Shown: positions 423 to 39,900 of the stretch, piece by piece
Layout of the letters: the number at the start of each line of letters is the position of its first letter
Position numbering within the stretch: position 1 is the stretch's first letter
Assembly: GCA_976226885.1 (NCBI GenBank)
Contig: OZ320321.1
Location: 43,524,001-43,588,000 of the forward strand
Length of the DNA stretch: 64,000 nucleotides
Direction: 5' to 3'
Source of the DNA: Iphione sp. A-MEVVRFRX5
Taxonomy: Eukaryota
Made by a program: the position numbers and the translations under genes
Notes under the pieces: model-generated
What the model was told of the DNA's origin: nothing
The model's input: only the letters and a program-made list of their open reading frames with translations
Database searches by the model: none

Positions 423-452
423 GCTATCGTCATCATCAATCATCAATCATCA

Positions 453-1430
453 CAGGAGACCCAGGGCTGCGAGCCTGCGAGGACGTGCTGTGGTTGGTAG
501 GTGTGCATGACAGGCAAGCACTGGCACACAGTTGTATAGGCTGGGGTGTTGGTATGACCACCCTGTAACCTTTGGGAGCCAACTCATAGCTAGGTTAACC
601 CCTTACTATTGAGTATTTACAACGTGCCCATGTTCTGGCTGGCTGAAGAGCTGTAACCCGTAAGGGGGCCTGTGTAACCTGGTATGGAATGAGCTTGGTT
701 ATACATTCAGAGGAACATGTGTGTGCATCTAGCTATCTGTGTAAAGCTGGGGCGTTGGTTTTGACCACCCTGTAACCCTTTGTGGAGCTGACCTCAGGCA
801 GGCTAACCCCTCACCTCTGGTCTTCACAGATAGTTTGGAGGTCCCAAGCTGGCCTACGGGCTGTAACCCTCGGGAGCTGGTGTGACCTGGTTCAAAGAGA
901 CCTGGTCACACCATGGACCTCCTCGCCTGTCGTAGACCCAGGCTGGCTGAAGGCTGTAACCCCATTCAGGGGGGCCAGATAGACCTAGGCAACTTGGTCT
1001 ATCTTGGGTCTACGTGAGAGTGAGTCCTGACACCGGCGGTTTTGCACCCGCTGTAACCCTGAGCATTTGGGGGGTGAGCGTAGTGGTCTGTGTTACACTG
1101 TACTGCCACCAGTAGACTCCTCTCGATTGCCTGTTTGACGTCACCTGTCAATCACTCCGCGCCTGAGTGGGCACCGGTCCTGGGCCTTCGCCGTCGTTCT
1201 CCCCTGGCCCGACGTTAAATATAGCCTGGGGGGGCCCTGTGGACTCGCTGTTTGTGGCTCAGTTTAGATCTCGCCAGTCGGTTGCCGGCACCTGCGGTGC
1301 ACTGTGCGACCCCTTCACCCCCCCCCCCCCCCCCAGAATTACACCTCGCCACAGTAGGACAAGCCAAAAACAGGTCTGCCTGAATGGGGATGACCAGGGG
1401 TCATTGCCCAACCCCCACCGTCAAGTCAAG
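453..1430 (+). mobile_element. Non-coding retroelement-like insertion with 20-bp flanking direct repeat and (GTCAA)n tail
   Basis: TCATCAATCATCAATCATCA at 433-452 and 1431-1450; 3' stem-loop 1385-1410; tail GTCAAGTCAAGTCA 1420-1433; no credible ORF. Confidence 0.65.
531..1124 (+). ncRNA. Array of six structured RNA modules resembling SRP-RNA Alu domains (UGUAA three-way junction)
   Basis: Modules 531-623, 629-719, 733-833, 837-922, 931-1014, 1016-1124, each with its own closing stem and core stem4-G-hairpin-C-TGTAA-CC(C)-loop-GG(G)-stem4; covarying stems, G-U pairs and UACG/GUAA tetraloops favour the plus strand. Confidence 0.7.
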
Positions 1431-1555
1431 TCATCAATCATCAATCATCAAAGTACATGTACTTCATGATGTTATCCACCATGCCATTGCTGCTCCAAAT
1501 CTTTTCTTTATGTCAATTTGGAACTTAACTTATTTGTGTCTTTTTTTGTCCACAG

Positions 1556-4500
1556 TTCGCAAATTTACTTCTTAAGGAATTCGTCTTCACGTGGTACAGG
1601 TGAGTGATTGCGTTGTCACTCATTGCAGCGTCAGAGTGAGTGAGTAAATGAGTGAGTGGGTGATATTGTATATTGCCTCAAATGAAAAAAACTGTAAATC
1701 CACTTCTAAAATGAGGTCAGTTTACCAAAGAAAGGCTTGGAGGTCCTGAGCTTATACAACTTGAAATCTGTTTGGGATGTTTGTCCTGATTATGTTTCTT
1801 CTATGTAGGTGGTATTTAATTTTGAAACGTAAAATGTCCATCTATTCAAACCATTCTGTGGACCAGTTGTAATCTAAAAATTAGGCCTCCCATAAGCTGA
1901 TCCATATAGATTCACATCTTTCTGTTTTATAGGGACTTAAGTGAAGATGAAGCTTTTGTAGATGAATTGAAGACAAGTTTGAGATTTATAGTGTCAGTTC
2001 TACTTAGAAGAATTAAAAAGGTAAGTTCAAATGTGAATGTAACTACAAAGTCGCTCTCAGTGATAGATAATGGCTATGTAGTTATTTCTGACTGATGGTG
2101 TCGTGCCCTGCTGACTTTGCCTGATGCCGACACGAATGCTGGTTATAGTGCAATTTTAATAATTTAATGTTGGAGCTCAATGATCTACTTTGTGAAAACT
2201 ACTGTTCTCACTGCGACCTGATAAATCAGTAAAAATTGTTTCTGTTCTGTTCTATTCTCCTTGTTAGTGCTAAACCTCCTTGGAATGTTATGGTTAAAGA
2301 TAAAGTCCCATTTAAAATGCGCCATTGCTGCCTTTGTTGCAGGTTGATCTCCCACAGCTAATATTAGACAGTGTATTGAAGACGTCCATACGACATTTAC
2401 ATTTTTATGTACAAGTGAAACAAAGAGGTAAGCTTCTGACATTATTTGAGAACTGTTTTAAGTAATGCTTAAAAGTTTATTGAGGCAATATCAATCAAAC
2501 TAACTGGGAGAACAAGTAAAAAAAACATCCAGGTATCTTCATGGAAGGAGTATTTGTTGGAACATTTTTATATTATAATTACTTGTACATATAAAGTCAA
2601 GTATCTTTGTCTGGATCCTTCAGTATCTCATGATATGGATATATTTTCCGGGGCCCAAATGTCGTTTTCCTATTCTTTCTCATGTTTTTGATCTGCGTTT
2701 TCCATTATCCGGATAAAATTATCAGAAAGACGGGGGATCCAAATAGTGAAGCCTGACTGTATAGGGTGACCATTTGACACGGGCAAATACACTTTCCTGT
2801 TCTTTCTTTTTATGTTTTTCCTTTATGTGACGAAGCCAAAGGTGATACCGATCTTCAAGCTGCAATGATAGAGTATTATGGGGCCCATCTACACTGTGCA
2901 GCTCGGAACCGGCAGTCTGAACTAGATTATTTAAGGGCTACCGCTGAGCGAATATTCCCATATATCTTACCTCTACAGTCCCTGCGATGCAGGTATGTTT
3001 TGAATGTTCTCAGTAGTTTCCTCCTTTTTAATATATGCAATATTAATAAGTGTACAGTGTGTATTTGTTAATATGGAAGTGTTGTGTGTCTGATATGGAA
3101 GATTTTGCTTTACTTCTTAAGTTTGCAATTTTCACCCAGAGGGAGATTTTGCTTTAATTTAAGGTAGAATGACTAGAGAGAGAACTGCTATAACTAACAC
3201 AAACAGATGATTAACCAGCTAATGATCAGTACATTAAAACATGATACAACGGTCCACATAGTTCTAAACTGTTATTAAATGTTATTTTGTAGGTAGCAAC
3301 TCTTATAGAGTGATGGAGATGTCTGTGTACCTCCTTTCTGTTTTTTCACTTATCTTGGCCCTACTCAGATTCAATGAGAGGTGTTTTCTAGCCCACTTCT
3401 GCCGTTATCTCATGCCAGTATCGCATGTGTGATACGTAAACAGTTACACTGAAGCTGAATCACTGAAAAGGCCCCCAGCAGAACTACGAAGTACGTAGGT
3501 GGCTGAAAGGAAGCCATGATACAGTGAAACTTATCTTATAAAAGCTTTCAAAAATTTGCGACACTTGCAAGATTTGCCATTAAATAATTTTTAGGGAGGA
3601 ATAGATAAGTGATGCACGTCCTGTACCCAGGATAGGACAGTATTCAATTGAAGTGGATAGAAGAAGAGGACTCAAACTGACACAGTGGGGGCCACATAGG
3701 CCCGGGCTACAAGACAGGGGTTGTAGGTCGCAATTTTAAATGACATATCTGGGCATCTCTGGAGCAAACACAGAGCACTGCTGTAGATGGTGAAAAGGAA
3801 AATTTAGGGGGGGGGGTATGCAGTGTATAGACCTAGATATGTTTTTGATATATGGAGCACAGAATGCAGGAACAATTTAAGTGTGTGTGTGGGCGGGGGG
3901 ATGTTGGGGGAATGGATCATGTGTAAACCCTGACATGTTTCGCACAGGGCATTAAGGGTGCAGGGAAAAGGTCTGTACAGTTAGAGAAGCAGTGTCAAAC
4001 CAGGTTAGGAGAGTTCGGTTACTAATGCACTGAATTATATCCTGAAGTGGAAAGATGTGAAAATTTAGTCCAGGATGGAGAGGGTAAAAACACTCAAGTC
4101 CTAGTGACATTTGAGGTACAAATGATGTACCATGTGCAGGAGTTTCTGGCGAGACATCTTGTAGAAACGTTCTTTCTTGTAATCACAAAGGCTAATTTTC
4201 CCATCTAGTATTCCTGTTGCACAAACTGAGCGTTGCTTTCACTATAAAAGACTTGCAGGCAATACAGCACTTGGGTGTTCATGTTTCTGTTAGTGGTGTG
4301 GGTGTATATTCATCCAAAGTCAATTGACACATCACCATACTGTCACATAGACACGCCCACCCATCACAACATGATAGTTACACTACCTATATAAAACGTT
4401 GCCTGAAAGTAGTCCGGCCATGGTGGCAGACATCTTGGAATAGTATCACTACACCTATGTGCAATCAAGCATGGCCGAGGGTTGTAAAAAGTAGTACCAG

Positions 4501-7500
4501 CCATGGCCATCAAAGAAGGTGACGTTTGGGCAGTTAGCAGTCTGTACTTTGACCCCTTGAGTCAACCCCCAAGTCGGTGGCCAAAGGCGCTTGTCATATT
4601 TAACACTACGGTCATGTACAGTGTTCAAAATGAGGGAAAAATAGGTTTCTAGTCATAGTATCAGTGTACTGCACTTTCTCATATTCTTAGATAAATATAG
4701 ATGCCTCAGCATGTTCTCAATGGATATTATGTTTAATACATTTACATAACCACATAATGACATGTGGCAGTCATTATTCTAATATGGTCACATGTGAGTG
4801 ACTGTTGCTTAAATGTCATCTGCATGGATTGGTTACATGAGTTAAATGACAGAATAGCATAATGTCATTGGCTATGGAACAGTTTGATTGACTGATATTG
4901 TGACCGTAATACATGTCATCCTGTCGCACAGTGATGCGTTAATTGAGTCCCACTATTCAGCAATAGTCTAGCCGTTGCAGGATTTTCCTTGCGGGGACTG
5001 TCTGACATCCTGATGAGATGAGGGAAGACATCCCAGCATGCGGATCACGAGTGAGTTTAGGTGTTCCTGCAGAATTGATATCAGTAGTCAAGGGGGACAG
5101 ACACTTCATGAACCCAGATCTGACCAAGATGATCTCCAGGTTCAAAGGATATCAGTGAACAAAAAACACATTGTGTTATTGGACTAGTGGGTGCTCTAGA
5201 GTCTGGTTTAGCACCTGCCAGTTCTTGTTGACAATGCAAGGAGAACTGTGCTGTTAAATGGTAGAAACCAGATCCTGTTTGTCCTCAAGTGTAGCTGTGG
5301 TAGAAGTGTGTTCTCTCAGTTCTAAGAGTTGTAGTCTTCTAGGTTTCTGGCCTTTAGGAGGTTCTGTGTTATCAGGTCCATTGATTGCAATGAGTAAGCT
5401 GTTAAGACCTGGCTATAGTAGATGAAGTTCATGATGCGTGACTGTTTCTACTGGAGGCTAAAGAACTGGTACTTGAGCAATGACTGTTTGTAGTTTTTAT
5501 AGTAATTTAGTTAGCTATATGTAAGAGTTGGCTAGGTGTAAGTATCCTCTTAAAATTATTTGATTGGGTTCCTTTGTAAACTTTGTAGTACTAAAGTGAT
5601 CGAAATAAAGGAAATGAGTTTTACTTCAGGATTGGAAGTGTTAAGCAAAGAAAAGAAATTGATGCATATGCCCGCACCCTCAGTCCTGATAAAGAAGGGA
5701 TCTTTGCTGAGGGGTTAGGGATGTATGTGTAGATAGAGCATTTCTCCAGCTCAACCATGGAGAGGTTGGCTAGACTGAGGGTATCTCAGTATTCATGGCT
5801 GTGCGACCTATATATAAATAGTCAGACACACGGAATCAAACGTTGTTACAGACAGTACCTTCTGGAGGTAGTTGCAGGGCTAAGTTGCAGATCAGAGGTA
5901 CCCGTGGCCTCAAGAACTATAGTACTATCTAGACACCCGTTAGCACGGACAGTGGAGGACAAGAAAAGACCGCAGTACCAGAATTGGTCAGACGTTCACT
6001 TTCCACAGTGTTCAATGTTGTGTGTAAGACACACATAATATACACAGTGCACACCCTTGCTCACGCATGTCTCCCTCATTCTCCCCCCTTTTTCCTTTTC
6101 CACTCATCGTCCCTCTGTCTTAGCTTGTTTCTCCTACACTTCCCATCTCTACTTCCTTCTAACTTCATCCCCATCTTTTCTTTAATCTTCGCCTCTGCTT
6201 CATGCCTCCTAGGCCTTTCTCCTGTCTCTCTGGCATTCTCCCTATCCCTCCCTTGTTCCCTCACCTCTCTTCGGTTCCCCCTCACCCTCCTCTGCAGTGT
6301 ATCTCCATTATACTCCTCTGCTCACTACAGGTATTTCATTCTTGATTTCCTTCTTCGCTGCTCCTCTTTGTCGTCTTTTGTCCAGAATATCTCCCCACTC
6401 AGCCATCTCTTTGGCAGCCTCCAGTGTCTCAGTTTTGCAAACTTATACAGCTGATTTATTTTATCATTGTCCCACACCTCATAGAGTTGGGGGACCTTAG
6501 GAATGCTGCTGGCTGACTGTCCAACCTTCTGTCACACTCTTGTGGGTCTTATAACTCTAAAACCCTTCAGTCAAATGAATTAAGTTTGATATATGATACT
6601 TATATACATGAGCCTATGACACTGTTTAATTTTGGTAATAATTCAAATATTCTAAAGGTGAAGTCATGCCAATTTTACTCTTTTGCTAGCATACTGGCAT
6701 ACATACCTCATTTAGGAATTTCTAAGTCTGACAATGCATTCACATGTACATACACACACAGCCACCAATACCCTCCTTCTACCAGCACCACGAAGTGCCA
6801 ATACAAGGTAGTTGTAGAGAGAGAGACCCTCCTCCCACCCCTCCAGCCTTGGAAGCAATCAACCAATGATGGTGGGGGATACTAGACCTCAACGGTCCAC
6901 AGTTTTGCTCATCTTGCATTTGAGTGCATGTGTGAAGCATACTAATTTTGATTAGTTTACAATAGTAGGCTAACTCTAGTGTGTTGTAGGAAGTAAAATG
7001 ATTTCGTTTCATTCATGCCGGACCCTTGTATTAAGTGAAAATCCCATGGTGACGCACGGATTTATTATAACAGTTGTAACAATTAGGACCATAACATTTG
7101 ACATAACACACAAGTCAAAGGGGTGTACGTTTCTTTTGTGAACAAGATATGCCTTAAAATTACTCTTGAAAATCTTTCTAATAGTACATGCATGTTCCTT
7201 AAAAAGTATTAAGTAGCTTAATTGAAATATAAACAGTTTTATTCAAAAGTTTGAATAAAAAATTTCATTTCCATAGACTATGAAATCCATGCTCTAATTA
7301 CTTATATTCCTTGCTGGGCGATTCTGAGCTTTATTTGTCATAATTTCCCACTGTGAAAACTACGCAGCTAAATAATGAACTTCTCTAAGAACTTCCTTTT
7401 CAAGAGAGATTCTTACCACTGAGTACCGTGTTTCTCCCTCTTATAAACCAATCTATGATTGAATGGACGCAGGACTTACTTTTATCTAACAAGAACCCCA

Positions 7501-36966: not shown

Positions 36967-39900
36967 CTGCAACAAAGAGCAAGCATCAACCTGTATATAA
37001 ACGCCAACCCGTAATACTCTATTTGTGGATGTACAACAAAATACTAGCAGCGCTAAAGGACTAGTTCCATTGCTAGGATAACCAATGGAGTGCCTTGGTA
37101 GGGAGACCATATGTAACCAGCCATGGAAAAGGGGTATTCCAGGCATCGGGTTAAACTTAAATAACCTGAAACGAAGAGGATTGTCATGGAAACTTTATTC
37201 GGTTATTTGCTGCACGCATTAGTTTTGGAAATCTTCAAATCCCAATGTAATTTTAGTCATGTGATGAGATACAGTATACACTGAATTACAATATTTGTCA
37301 GGAAATTCGAAATAATACCATATCAGAACTCGTATTGTTGGCTGGAGCTCAAAGTTGATAAAACCAGTCTTCGGCCTCAACCTCTAAACTTACCCTACCC
37401 CCTGGTCCATACTTAAACAGAAAGAATTCATTGTGTAATTCATAATTCCGTTCTCCTCTCTTTTGTATGGTACAACAGCCTCTGTGCCTAAAGTATAGGC
37501 CTAATCACTATGATGACAGAGGGCAAANNNNNNNNNNNNNNNNNNNNNNNNNNNNNNNNNNNNNNNNNNNNNNNNNNNNNNNNNNNNNNNNNNNNNNNNN
37601 NNNNNNNNNNNNNNNNNNNNNNNNNNNNNNNNNNNNNNNNNNNNNNNNNNNNNNNNNNNNNNNNNNNTGATGATCCTTCTCTAACGAAGCGTCACAACTT
37701 ACACCATGGTGCCCTCTCCGGGCGTGCCAGCCGTCTGAGCCTGTAGAACCTCCTGCACGTTCTCGCGCGAGTATAGGCCCAAGGGCGTGTTGTACTGCAG
37801 GTGGGCGACCTTGGCTTCTCCCTCGTGCTGGCTGGGAGCGTGCTGTTGGTACTCGGGCGCCTGGCCGGGCGCATAGTGCACGTTCTGCACGCGCGGCTTG
37901 TGCACGGCCGCAGCGGCCTGGCCAGCGTCTGGCAGGGGTGAACGCTGACGTCGACGCGGCTGTTCCTGCGGTTGCAGCTGCGGCTGGGGAGACGCCGGCT
38001 GCTGCTGCTGCTGGGCTTGCTGCGGCTGGGGCTGAGGCGCTACCTGCCGCTGCATTGCCGGCTGTGGAGATCGGCCTCGTTGGCCACCTACGGGACTCGG
38101 CGACGTGGTGTTCTCCGGCATGACGGAAGCAGCGGCCGCCACTTCCCATGGCTTCACGCCACCACCCGACTTCAGCGTTCCTGCCCAGGCAGGCGTATCC
38201 GGTTCTTCGATTCTTGGCACCTGGTAGGGAGCCGGCGCTGGAGCTGCAGGGGGCTGCGGGTGGTGTGCGGGGGCAGGGAACCGTTGCGGAGAGGTGGGGG
38301 CCTTTACAGGGGACCAGCCGCCCTGAGCCGCTGCCTGGGGCTTCTGCTGCTTCGGCGCCCATCCTGGCTCGTAGAATGGCTTCCCACCGTAAATGCCGGG
38401 GTCCGGTGGCTTCCATTGCTTAGTCGGACGCCCACTAGGTCGAGCTGTAAGCATGAAATGTAAATTGTACCTATCAGGCGAGATTGTGTTGCACATGTTT
38501 TCAACATGAGTGAATCCCACATATCCTAGACAGGTAGTAGTGTATTGTATTTAAGCCACTACACTCATCAGCGTTAGAACAGGCTACGTCTAATAGCGAC
38601 ACAACCATAGCTAAACGACTAAATGACTCCGCTGGATCACCTCCATGCTTTCAAATAAAATATGTTAATAACACATGACTATACTAATAGAGTAAAAACA
38701 TGTAGTTATCTCTTCGACATTTCTTTAATATTTTACGGAAGATTATAATAAAACTTCATGGCGGGGGTATGATGAATCCCTAAACTAAATGTTGCTTCTC
38801 GAATTGAAACACGTTCAGTTCAGGAGTTTGATTAAATAGGGGTCTGCAGGTAGGGATCTAACGCCAGACGAAACACATGGGTTGTCAACTCGAGCATATG
38901 TCCCCGAGTTTAAGCAAGGGGATGGATTTAGTGATTCTGAAAAGAATAGCAGTTAAAAAAAAGATTGCCGGTTAATAGGATTTTCACAGGGCTTCACAAT
39001 CATTGGTTCTGTTCAAGTGTGGCAACAATGAGCCGATTGCCAAACTTTGAAGAAACGGGTAGTGTGGATGTCACTTTAACAAATTGTGATGTCATAATGA
39101 GAATCAAGTAATCAGATCGCTTAATTTTTTTTGGACAATGTAACAATTTGGTAAAAGTTATATCTACAGTGCCCGGTTCTTTAACTGTTGGCGATAGGCC
39201 CATTCAGTTCATGCCCATCGTTTTACTCCAGTTATCCAACCTGCACAGGCCATCGGTAACTTTCCAGCAGTCTGTGTCAGGGACTTAAAAGTAGTAGGCA
39301 CACATACCAACTGAATTGCGAGTTTTAACTGGAGAGACAGAGAAAGTATCTTGGCAGTAATATCGTGGCTGAAAATAAATGAGAGAATTACGGAGAAGGA
39401 GGACGATGTTAAATTGCAAATACACGTACATCAAGGCGCACCGAGAGAACGGAGACAAAGGACAATATGATTCGGTAAGAGGACTCCAAAGAAGACGGAT
39501 CGGTGTCATAGAGCAGCACGAGAAGGGAACGGCCAGATGTAGTCCAAGAGCTGAGAGGGCAACAGTACGGAGACGGTCAATTGGTCACGAGCAGCTCATA
39601 GCGAGCCGCTCAGGGTGGGGACGCGCTGCTCCTACTTACAGTCTTCTTCGACTTGAATATCTCGTGTCATATCAATCTGTGGTGGCGGCGGTGCGCGGTT
39701 GGCGCCTCTTGATCGCCGGGGCTTCGAACCGAATTTTTTCTTAAGCTCTTTGACCGGTGTGTGCTTATACTCCTCCACTTCGACTGTAAGTTAATGACAT
39801 GTTTATTGTCCAAATAGACCGTTCTTATTGTGTAGGTGGCTTTTGCTTAATTCAACGCCAAAGAATGTACATGTGCGTTCGTTTACAGAAAACAATCGAT

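Follow-up and report, generated by a model that had tools for sequence, protein, structure and literature searches.

A tandem array of six Alu-5'-domain-like RNA modules in a non-autonomous retroposon of Iphione sp., with a partial association with TATA-box start sites

A complete retroposon insertion with a six-module body

We analyzed a 64,000-nt stretch of the genome of Iphione sp. A-MEVVRFRX5 (GenBank assembly GCA_976226885.1, contig OZ320321.1, positions 43,524,001 to 43,588,000 of the forward strand; hereafter the window, with coordinates counted from its first base), in which positions 453 to 1430 on the plus strand form a complete 978-bp insertion whose body is an array of six RNA modules at 531-1124. 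The insertion is a non-autonomous retroposon of the class lacking long terminal repeats (non-LTR), a short interspersed nuclear element (SINE) in the broad sense, present in dozens to hundreds of copies, and the cores of its modules resemble the 5' portion of the Alu domain of 7SL, the signal recognition particle (SRP) RNA. The features of the locus are given below, in which bit scores refer to a covariance model built solely from nucleotides 1-46 of 7SL.

433-452, plus strand: left copy of the target site duplication (TSD), 20 bp, within a (TCATCAA)n microsatellite; an identical 20-mer lies at 1431-1450
453-1430, plus strand: complete copy of the SINE-like non-autonomous non-LTR retroposon, recognized by its genomic copies, TSDs and tails
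453-487, plus strand: 5' head, a candidate internal core promoter for RNA polymerase II (Pol II) of the initiator/downstream promoter element (Inr/DPE) type; start CA(+1)GG, GGACGTG at 481-487
455-521, plus strand: 5' strand of a long-range helix of about 55 bp in minimum-free-energy folds, pairing with 1125-1191 and enclosing the array
531-623, plus strand: module 1, type A; core 539-580, long L2 loop, TGTAA at 564-568; 15.1 bits
629-719, plus strand: module 2, type B; core 637-670, helices H3 and H4 capped by tetraloops, TGTAA at 652-656; 16.2 bits
733-833, plus strand: module 3, type A; core 745-789, TGTAA at 771-775; 9.0 bits, above all background
837-922, plus strand: module 4, type B; core 847-878, TGTAA at 862-866; 9.6 bits
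931-1014, plus strand: module 5, type B; core 941-976, TGTAA at 955-959; 15.2 bits
1016-1124, plus strand: module 6, the odd one; core 1031-1076, H2 formed by CACC/GGTG, TGTAA at 1052-1056; 13.1 bits
1125-1191, plus strand: 3' strand of the long-range closing helix in minimum-free-energy folds
1215-1224, plus strand: TATA-like TTAAATATAG, conserved among copies, with G/C-rich flanks, about 205 nt before the 3' end
1390-1430, plus strand: 3' end derived from a long interspersed nuclear element (LINE); stem-loop at 1390-1404, then TTGCCCAACCCCCACC, then a (GTCAA)n tail at 1420-1430
1431-1450, plus strand: right copy of the TSD, a perfect repeat of 433-452

A similarity search of the 1.18-Gb assembly to which the window belongs returned 623 candidate copies; the 40 scored among them have 81-95% identity, and most share the start CAGGAGACC. 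Among 36 copies examined, 24 have a TSD of 9-15 bp immediately after the tail, and the tails are microsatellites, as is the (GTCAA)n run that ends the window copy. Pattern counts across the genome suggest that intact 5' ends number about 30, intact 3' ends about 100 and module-5 cores about 140; the excess of intact 3' over intact 5' ends indicates that many copies are 5'-truncated. The family combines TSDs, a fixed 5' end, a 3' tail in common with an autonomous LINE and the lack of an open reading frame (ORF), as do other non-autonomous non-LTR retroposons. An earlier note on this DNA, written from the sequence alone, had described a noncoding retroelement insertion, and the TSD, the tail and the many copies bear this out. 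A scan of a metagenome collection with a single exact pattern gave no match.

Several copies depart from the window copy. A subfamily (L010, L014, L015, L018-L021 and L065) joins the same six modules to a different 3' region with an (ACCTGA)n tail, which implies a second LINE partner or a tail variant. In L065 (C19:63.74 Mb), which is flanked by TSDs, modules 1-4 are fused directly to the 3' region with its (ACCTGA)n tail, and in L066 (C2:74.22 Mb), likewise TSD-flanked, modules 1-2 and part of module 3 are followed by G-rich filler and the 3' region. The copy L046 had been a candidate for a full-length autonomous version and was rejected, being a SINE copy with a nested Gypsy-type LTR retrotransposon (L046 positions 1047-6002) that carries gag, protease, reverse transcriptase, RNase H and integrase between 107-bp terminal direct repeats.

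Six modules built to one plan

Matching by regular expression recovered the six modules (84-109 nt) exactly as the earlier note had segmented them, with every stem, core and additional hairpin present as written. Each module consists of a closing stem of 6-11 bp, a core, a further hairpin and the return strand of the closing stem, and each core (32-46 nt) consists of a 4-bp helix H2, a single G, the hairpin H3, an invariant TGTAA, the hairpin H4 and the return strand H2'. Two types can be told apart. Modules 1 and 3 have a long L2 loop containing GUUGGU...GACC, whereas modules 2, 4 and 5 have minimal H3 and H4 hairpins with tetraloop caps (GAAG, UACG, GNRA or UUCG in the family majority); module 6 sets itself apart from both types.

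Folding with RNAfold, which the same note had proposed, recovered the closing stems and most inner helices, both in single modules and in the whole element. Fold z-scores were strong for modules 5 (-5.8) and 4 (-4.9), moderate for module 2 (-2.2) and weak for modules 1, 3 and 6, and the H2' strand of module 6 has an alternative pairing, of its own GGTG with a downstream CACC. Tandem Repeats Finder detected no tandem repeat in the array, which indicates that the primary sequences of the modules have diverged while the fold was kept. A covariance model built from modules 2, 4 and 5 alone found modules 6 (19.3 bits), 1 (18.1 bits) and 3 (17.8 bits) as its next best matches, compared to 10.8 bits for the best background match on both strands of the 64 kb. 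Applied genome-wide, the core model gave 132,138 candidates, 150 of which were scored, and was uninformative.

Selection on the fold and the RNA strand

Across the 40-copy alignment, 96.7% of pair cells were canonical, compared to 36-45% when the 3' partners were slid. Double (compensatory) changes occurred in 15 pairs and 49 cells, six of the pairs being common to at least three copies, whereas the maximum in 500 random re-pairings was 13 pairs, 20 cells and three shared pairs; the genomic copies are related by descent, and these counts are not probabilities. Among the clearest exchanges are the module 1 closing pair 536/618 (A-T in 24 copies, G-C in 11), the pair 584/612 (T-A in 32, A-T in 5), the pair 671/705 of H5 in module 2 (T-A in 23, A-T in 8) and the module 2 pair 676/700 (A-T in 29, G-C in 6). 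The long helix behaves likewise, with 93% canonical pair cells against 37-43% when slid, and with pair 465/1179 present as G-C in 20 copies and as C-G in 9.

Constraint follows the same elements. Divergence from the majority base was 4.0% at paired positions, 7.8% at unpaired positions and 1.2% in the six TGTAA motifs, and sites that vary between subfamily groups made up 34 of 282 unpaired positions, 10-12 of 312 paired positions and none of the 30 TGTAA positions; 8 of the 9-10 subfamily-variable pairs stay canonical. The claim of the earlier note that stems covary around a fixed TGTAA thus holds in the alignment. Canonical pairing, double changes and the constraint on stems and TGTAA together form the pattern expected from selection on source RNAs, and show a fold evidently maintained by selection in the lineages that yield new copies. 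The window copy contains seven G-U pairs, all on the plus strand, which together with the tail and the LINE-type 3' end marks the plus strand as that of the RNA transcript.

The cores resemble the 5' domain of 7SL

The genome's own 7SL genes, located with the Rfam model RF00017, comprise four full-length loci (254-264 bits), all outside the window. Their nucleotides 1-46 read GACU-G-(H3)-UGUAA-(H4)-GGUC, the same arrangement as in the cores. We compared the two in both directions. (i) The model of the module 2, 4 and 5 cores had as its top match in each 7SL locus precisely nucleotides 1-46, end to end, at 14.7-15.1 bits. In 72 kb of control DNA that included the LINE, a model of all six cores ranked the four 7SL 5' domains as its top four matches (15.6-16.0 bits), with the next best at 12.9 bits. 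(ii) In the reverse direction, a model from 7SL nucleotides 1-46, which holds no information from the element, had the six cores, each delimited exactly, as its six top-ranking matches in an unfiltered search of both strands of the 64-kb window (16.2, 15.2, 15.1, 13.1, 9.6 and 9.0 bits; next best 8.2), though modules 3 and 4 barely exceed background. Such agreement of rank and register in both directions makes the resemblance to the SRP Alu domain objective rather than an impression, and bears out the Alu-type 5' layout that the earlier note had described. All six modules have the three-way junction of H2, H3 and H4 with a short conserved strand between H3 and H4, and all six carry the UGUNR U-turn with its critical G in the form UGUAA.

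The same comparison sets limits to the likeness. Rfam, searched over the whole window at gathering score and at E values up to 10 on positions 400-1500 and 725-1020, returned no SRP, tRNA, 5S or ribozyme family and only chance matches of microRNA or small nucleolar RNA type; its SRP models are full-length and are a weak test for a 40-nt piece. This search with Rfam's SRP models, also put forward in the earlier note, was blank at either threshold. The pairing of loops L2 and L1.2 was not above chance in any module (longest Watson-Crick match 0-3 nt, shuffle p 0.10-1.0), module 6 included, for which a loop-loop kiss had been suggested; several of the loops concerned are plain stable tetraloops. 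Neither the S domain (helices 6 and 8) nor the long helix 5 of a 7SL gene was found, and the window contains no match to RF00017, so the array is not a 7SL gene, as had already been noted. Given the missing Rfam match, loop-loop pairing and S domain, we file the cores as Alu-5'-domain-like only and outside the SRP RNA family; for these cores, descent from 7SL and convergence are indistinguishable.

A separate LINE supplies the 3' end

The last 34-110 nt of the element are common to LINE sequences at six loci (L047, L050, L054, L056, L059 and L060). This shared 3' end comprises a stem with a UUCG-type loop, TTGCCCAACCCCC... and the (GTCAA)n tail; in the window copy the stem is shortened by a deletion of about 13 nt, while other copies have the full stem and its UUCG-type cap. 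The LINE is about 10 kb long (L056, L050, L062-L064); CCHC knuckles mark its ORF1, and its ORF2 encodes an APE endonuclease domain together with RVT_1 and RNase H domains. The LINE has CAGTTCGCTCTGCGAC as its 5' end, more than 2 kb of 232-bp tandem monomers make up its 5' untranslated region (UTR), and its closest named relatives are crustacean and insect proteins (34-38% identity). The element is mobilized by way of this 3' stem-loop and (GTCAA)n tail, which it has taken over from the LINE.

Similarity between the LINE and the module array was absent, and the core model had no match above background in the 10 kb of LINE sequence. Derivation of the modules from the LINE was rejected on these grounds, since the 232-bp monomers of its 5' UTR are unlike the array, which is thus not a UTR left over from a deleted LINE. 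The search for an upstream ORF2 suggested by the earlier note found none; the element is non-autonomous, with its 3' end taken from a separate LINE that lacks the modules.

A candidate Pol II promoter at the 5' head

The motif GGACGTG lies exactly at +28 to +34 from the predicted start CA(+1)GG and is conserved among copies. In Drosophila core promoters the DPE consensus is RGWCGTG at +28, and the Inr/DPE arrangement is used by arthropod LINEs. ARAGORN found no tRNA-like head in the element, and a conserved TTTT run inside module 6 argues against full-length Pol III transcripts. The element is probably transcribed by Pol II from its first base through this Inr/DPE-type head, alongside which the target DNA often holds a TATA box. 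The internal TATA-like motif, TTAAATATAG at 1215-1224, might direct read-out into a downstream host gene.

Insertion near TATA boxes and start sites

Full-length copies often have their first base 30-33 bp downstream of a TATA box, a pattern that concerns the 100 bp upstream of L002, L003, L005-L011, L020, L029, L030 and L034-L036. The statistics rest on 36 full-length copies. TATAWA starts at -37 to -25 in 9 of 34 full-length copies compared to 3.5% of background windows (binomial p 1.7e-6), and with one mismatch allowed the count rises to 15 of 36, whereas other 15-nt windows in these flanks reach 3-7 of 36 (Fisher p 1e-4). Most of the boxes start between -30 and -33, on the far side of the TSD in the target DNA; in TATA-linked copies the TSD spans about -10 to +1 relative to the predicted start site. 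In two upstream flanks that were tested, the DNA near the TATA box is unique. The copy L007 precedes a histone H2A-like ORF by about 95 nt, and the copy L006 lies upstream of a kinase-like first exon, recognized by eye only and with no Pfam match. Upstream of the window copy (385-452) there is an (ATT)n run ending near -31 and no clean TATA box.

On C26 between 55.88 and 56.29 Mb, one H2A-like promoter (CCAAT, TGACGTCA, TATAAAA) has received independent insertions at the same position, full-length LINEs among them. They comprise SINEs of two subfamilies with different tails (L007 and L010), a 5'-truncated LINE (L047) and a further LINE (L050); their TSDs differ in length, and L047 stands in front of a full-length LINE. 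The cluster contains head-to-tail LINE arrays about 9.9 kb apart near the contig end. TATA boxes were absent at the LINE copies outside the histone cluster (five examined) and at most SINE copies with other tails, and the (ACCTGA)n-tailed copies rarely have an upstream TATA box. The TATA association is real but partial, and is consistent with targeting by one partner lineage, with targeting by the ribonucleoprotein (RNP) or with retention. A limited literature search found no description of a TATA-targeted non-LTR element, which does not prove its absence.

Neighboring sequence

Downstream of the insertion, three short exons on the plus strand at 1557-1601 (ANLLLKEFVFTWYR), 1933-2019 (DLSEDEAFVDELKTSLRFIVSVLLRRIK) and 2341-2400 (VDLPQLILDSVLKTSIRHL) are by-eye candidates for parts of a PXA-domain (sorting-nexin-like) gene. 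If they belong to such a gene, the element has the same orientation and lies within an intron or upstream of one. A run of 140 N at 37528-37667 marks an assembly gap or a masked stretch.

What the modules may bind

We propose that the modules together act as a platform to which the host SRP9/14 heterodimer binds multivalently, a reading on which we consider the evidence evenly poised. Such a platform would place the RNA at ribosomes where the reverse transcriptase of the partner LINE is being made, as proposed for Alu, and within the tandem array each domain would be able to fold alone owing to its closing stem and stable tetraloops. The UGUNR U-turn and G24 of human 7SL are critical for SRP9/14 binding (PMC11581171), Alu retrotransposition requires the 46-nt 5' Alu domain, which associates with SRP9/14 (PMC11760393), and Alu RNA driven by Pol II still retrotransposes (PMC11760393). 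Taken together, these results make recruitment of SRP9/14 by the element plausible.

A number of observations weigh against this proposal. With cross-model scores as low as they are (9-16 bits, E 0.02-2.7 per 128 kb), the case rests on rank and register, and the covariance-model test is not independent of the initial reader's impression. The blank Rfam searches and the missing L2/L1.2 pairing belong here, as do the ordinary tetraloops that end H3 and H4 in modules 2, 4 and 5; in true Alu domains, loop-loop tertiary pairs are needed for folding and for SRP9/14 assembly. Similarity of the array to 7SL is absent at the level of BLAST and present only at that of motif and structure (9-16 bits), which makes convergence possible. 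The element carries the 3' recognition stem-loop of the LINE, so that Alu-type docking on ribosomes may be unneeded. L065, inserted with four modules, and L066, with about 2.5, indicate that six are not strictly required for a single round of insertion. A Pfam search of the genome for SRP9 and SRP14 was also blank, as it was in control genomes, and for these small, intron-split proteins it is uninformative.

Much of this can be read in another way, namely that the modules are generic selected three-way junctions, insulated and with stable tetraloop caps, whose likeness to the SRP Alu domain is coincidental and which have no SRP9/14 role. They could then serve, for example, in binding ORF1p or ORF2p of the partner LINE, in RNA stability, in nuclear export or in packaging. 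We take this possibility seriously without favoring it. The blank Rfam models, the absent loop-loop pairs, the low cross-model scores and the lack of primary-sequence homology to 7SL beyond short junction motifs are as it would have them, but over about 270 kb of tested DNA the 7SL 5' domain is what the cores match best in structure and sequence, reciprocally and in exact register, and the invariant motif is exactly UGUNR with the critical G. Nor do the modules look like a normal binding site of a LINE protein, since the partner LINE lacks them.

A further explanation is that the modules bind Pol II or the pre-initiation complex and so bring the RNP to start sites, which would account for copies 30-33 bp downstream of TATA boxes. 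Human Alu RNA binds Pol II directly, and the TATA enrichment at -30 to -33, the TSDs at roughly -10 to +1 and the lack of TATA boxes at module-less LINE copies outside the histone cluster all fit. We nonetheless regard such a tether as unlikely. Subfamilies with all six modules and (ACCTGA)n or ACATGTCAAG... tails mostly lack a TATA box, whereas the LINE, without modules, has inserted repeatedly at the histone H2A start site, so that target choice goes with the 3' end and partner and not with the modules, in what are small samples. A role at the level of DNA, as arrays of protein-binding sites around CTGTAACC or as functionless leftover palindromes, is very improbable, for although both strands fold about equally by energy, there are compensatory changes, G-U-compatible pairs are kept, stems diverge less than loops, and the seven G-U pairs stand only on the plus strand, the transcript strand by tail and LINE 3' end.

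Returning to the SRP9/14 platform, the features of the element can be joined in a single account, in which a six-armed minimal Alu-5'-domain RNA, from 7SL or by convergence, would act as a platform for SRP9/14 (or Pol II), start from an Inr/DPE head and home to the start sites of TATA-containing genes, so that new copies would land with a complete core promoter. As a whole, this account is tentative and we hold it to be rather doubtful.

Comparison with known systems

The cores share with the Alu 5' domain of 7SL the 4-bp H2, the G, H3, UGUAA, the short H4 and an H2' without linker. Unlike 7SL, they are 32-46 nt long with frequent tetraloops and lack the L2/L1.2 pairing, the S domain and an Rfam match; every unit also gains a closing stem, formally like helix 1 of archaeal and Bacillus SRP RNA, and six units stand in tandem inside one long helix.

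Among retroposons, the nearest parallels are the 7SL-derived SINEs (primate Alu, rodent B1 and hagfish SINE1-1_EBu), which are likewise non-autonomous and LINE-dependent and have an Alu-domain-type fold. Alu itself is a dimer of Alu-domain units. In hagfish, SINEs derived from 7SL arose independently, and SINE1-1_EBu combines a retained Alu-domain fold with a LINE-derived tail (PMC7245038). In contrast to SINE1, the element described here is from an invertebrate and has six reduced, insulated units with no clear sequence descent from 7SL; its head is a candidate Pol II promoter of Inr/DPE type where SINE1 has Pol III A and B boxes; and in place of L1 or RTE its partner is a LINE that bears RNase H and ends in a (GTCAA)n tail. 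A limited literature search found no description of an invertebrate SINE with multiple Alu domains, though this does not prove that none exists.

The cores copy the H2-H3-UGUAA-H4 unit that forms the minimal 46-nt 5' Alu domain of Moldovan, Yin and Moran (2024, PMC11760393), in whose work embedded Alu sequences still mobilize. That result is experimental, obtained in human cells with L1. In its length of about 1 kb, its lack of Pol III hallmarks, its CA(+1)G start and its DPE-like GGACGTG at +28, the element shares traits with SVA and LAVA, which are composite non-autonomous retroposons transcribed by Pol II, and with the arthropod LINEs jockey, Doc and the I factor, whose internal promoters are of Inr/DPE type. 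However, SVA and LAVA hold antisense Alu fragments rather than folded Alu domains, and the head of our element is a candidate promoter.

With regard to target choice, the element is comparable to the target-specific retroelements R1 and R2 (ribosomal DNA), TRAS and SART (telomeres), Dictyostelium TRE (near tRNA genes) and yeast Ty3 (Pol III start sites) in its insertion at a set distance from a transcription landmark and in its repeated, independent hits at one site. In the present case, a TATA box or start site of Pol II would serve as the landmark, and only about 40% of full-length copies show it.

Significance

In the literature consulted, well-defined SINEs with a 7SL or Alu-domain head are known from one mammalian clade and hagfish only (PMC7245038). 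The element looks like an apparent multi-copy version of Alu's copying strategy, and an invertebrate element with six such junctions would show that retroposons have recruited the Alu-type fold repeatedly. If the joint account of platform, promoter and homing is true, it would represent a second, independent and more elaborate Alu strategy outside vertebrates, coupled to a target choice undescribed for non-LTR elements. The 32-46-nt domains are natural variants with which to ask what SRP9/14 needs, i.e., whether junction and U-turn are enough or loop-loop contacts are required too. The array could sequester SRP9/14 or stall ribosomes, and may thereby affect host translation. The association with start sites, if it reflects targeting, would add a kind of target choice that is new among non-LTR elements and give them a direct means of rewiring 5' UTRs.

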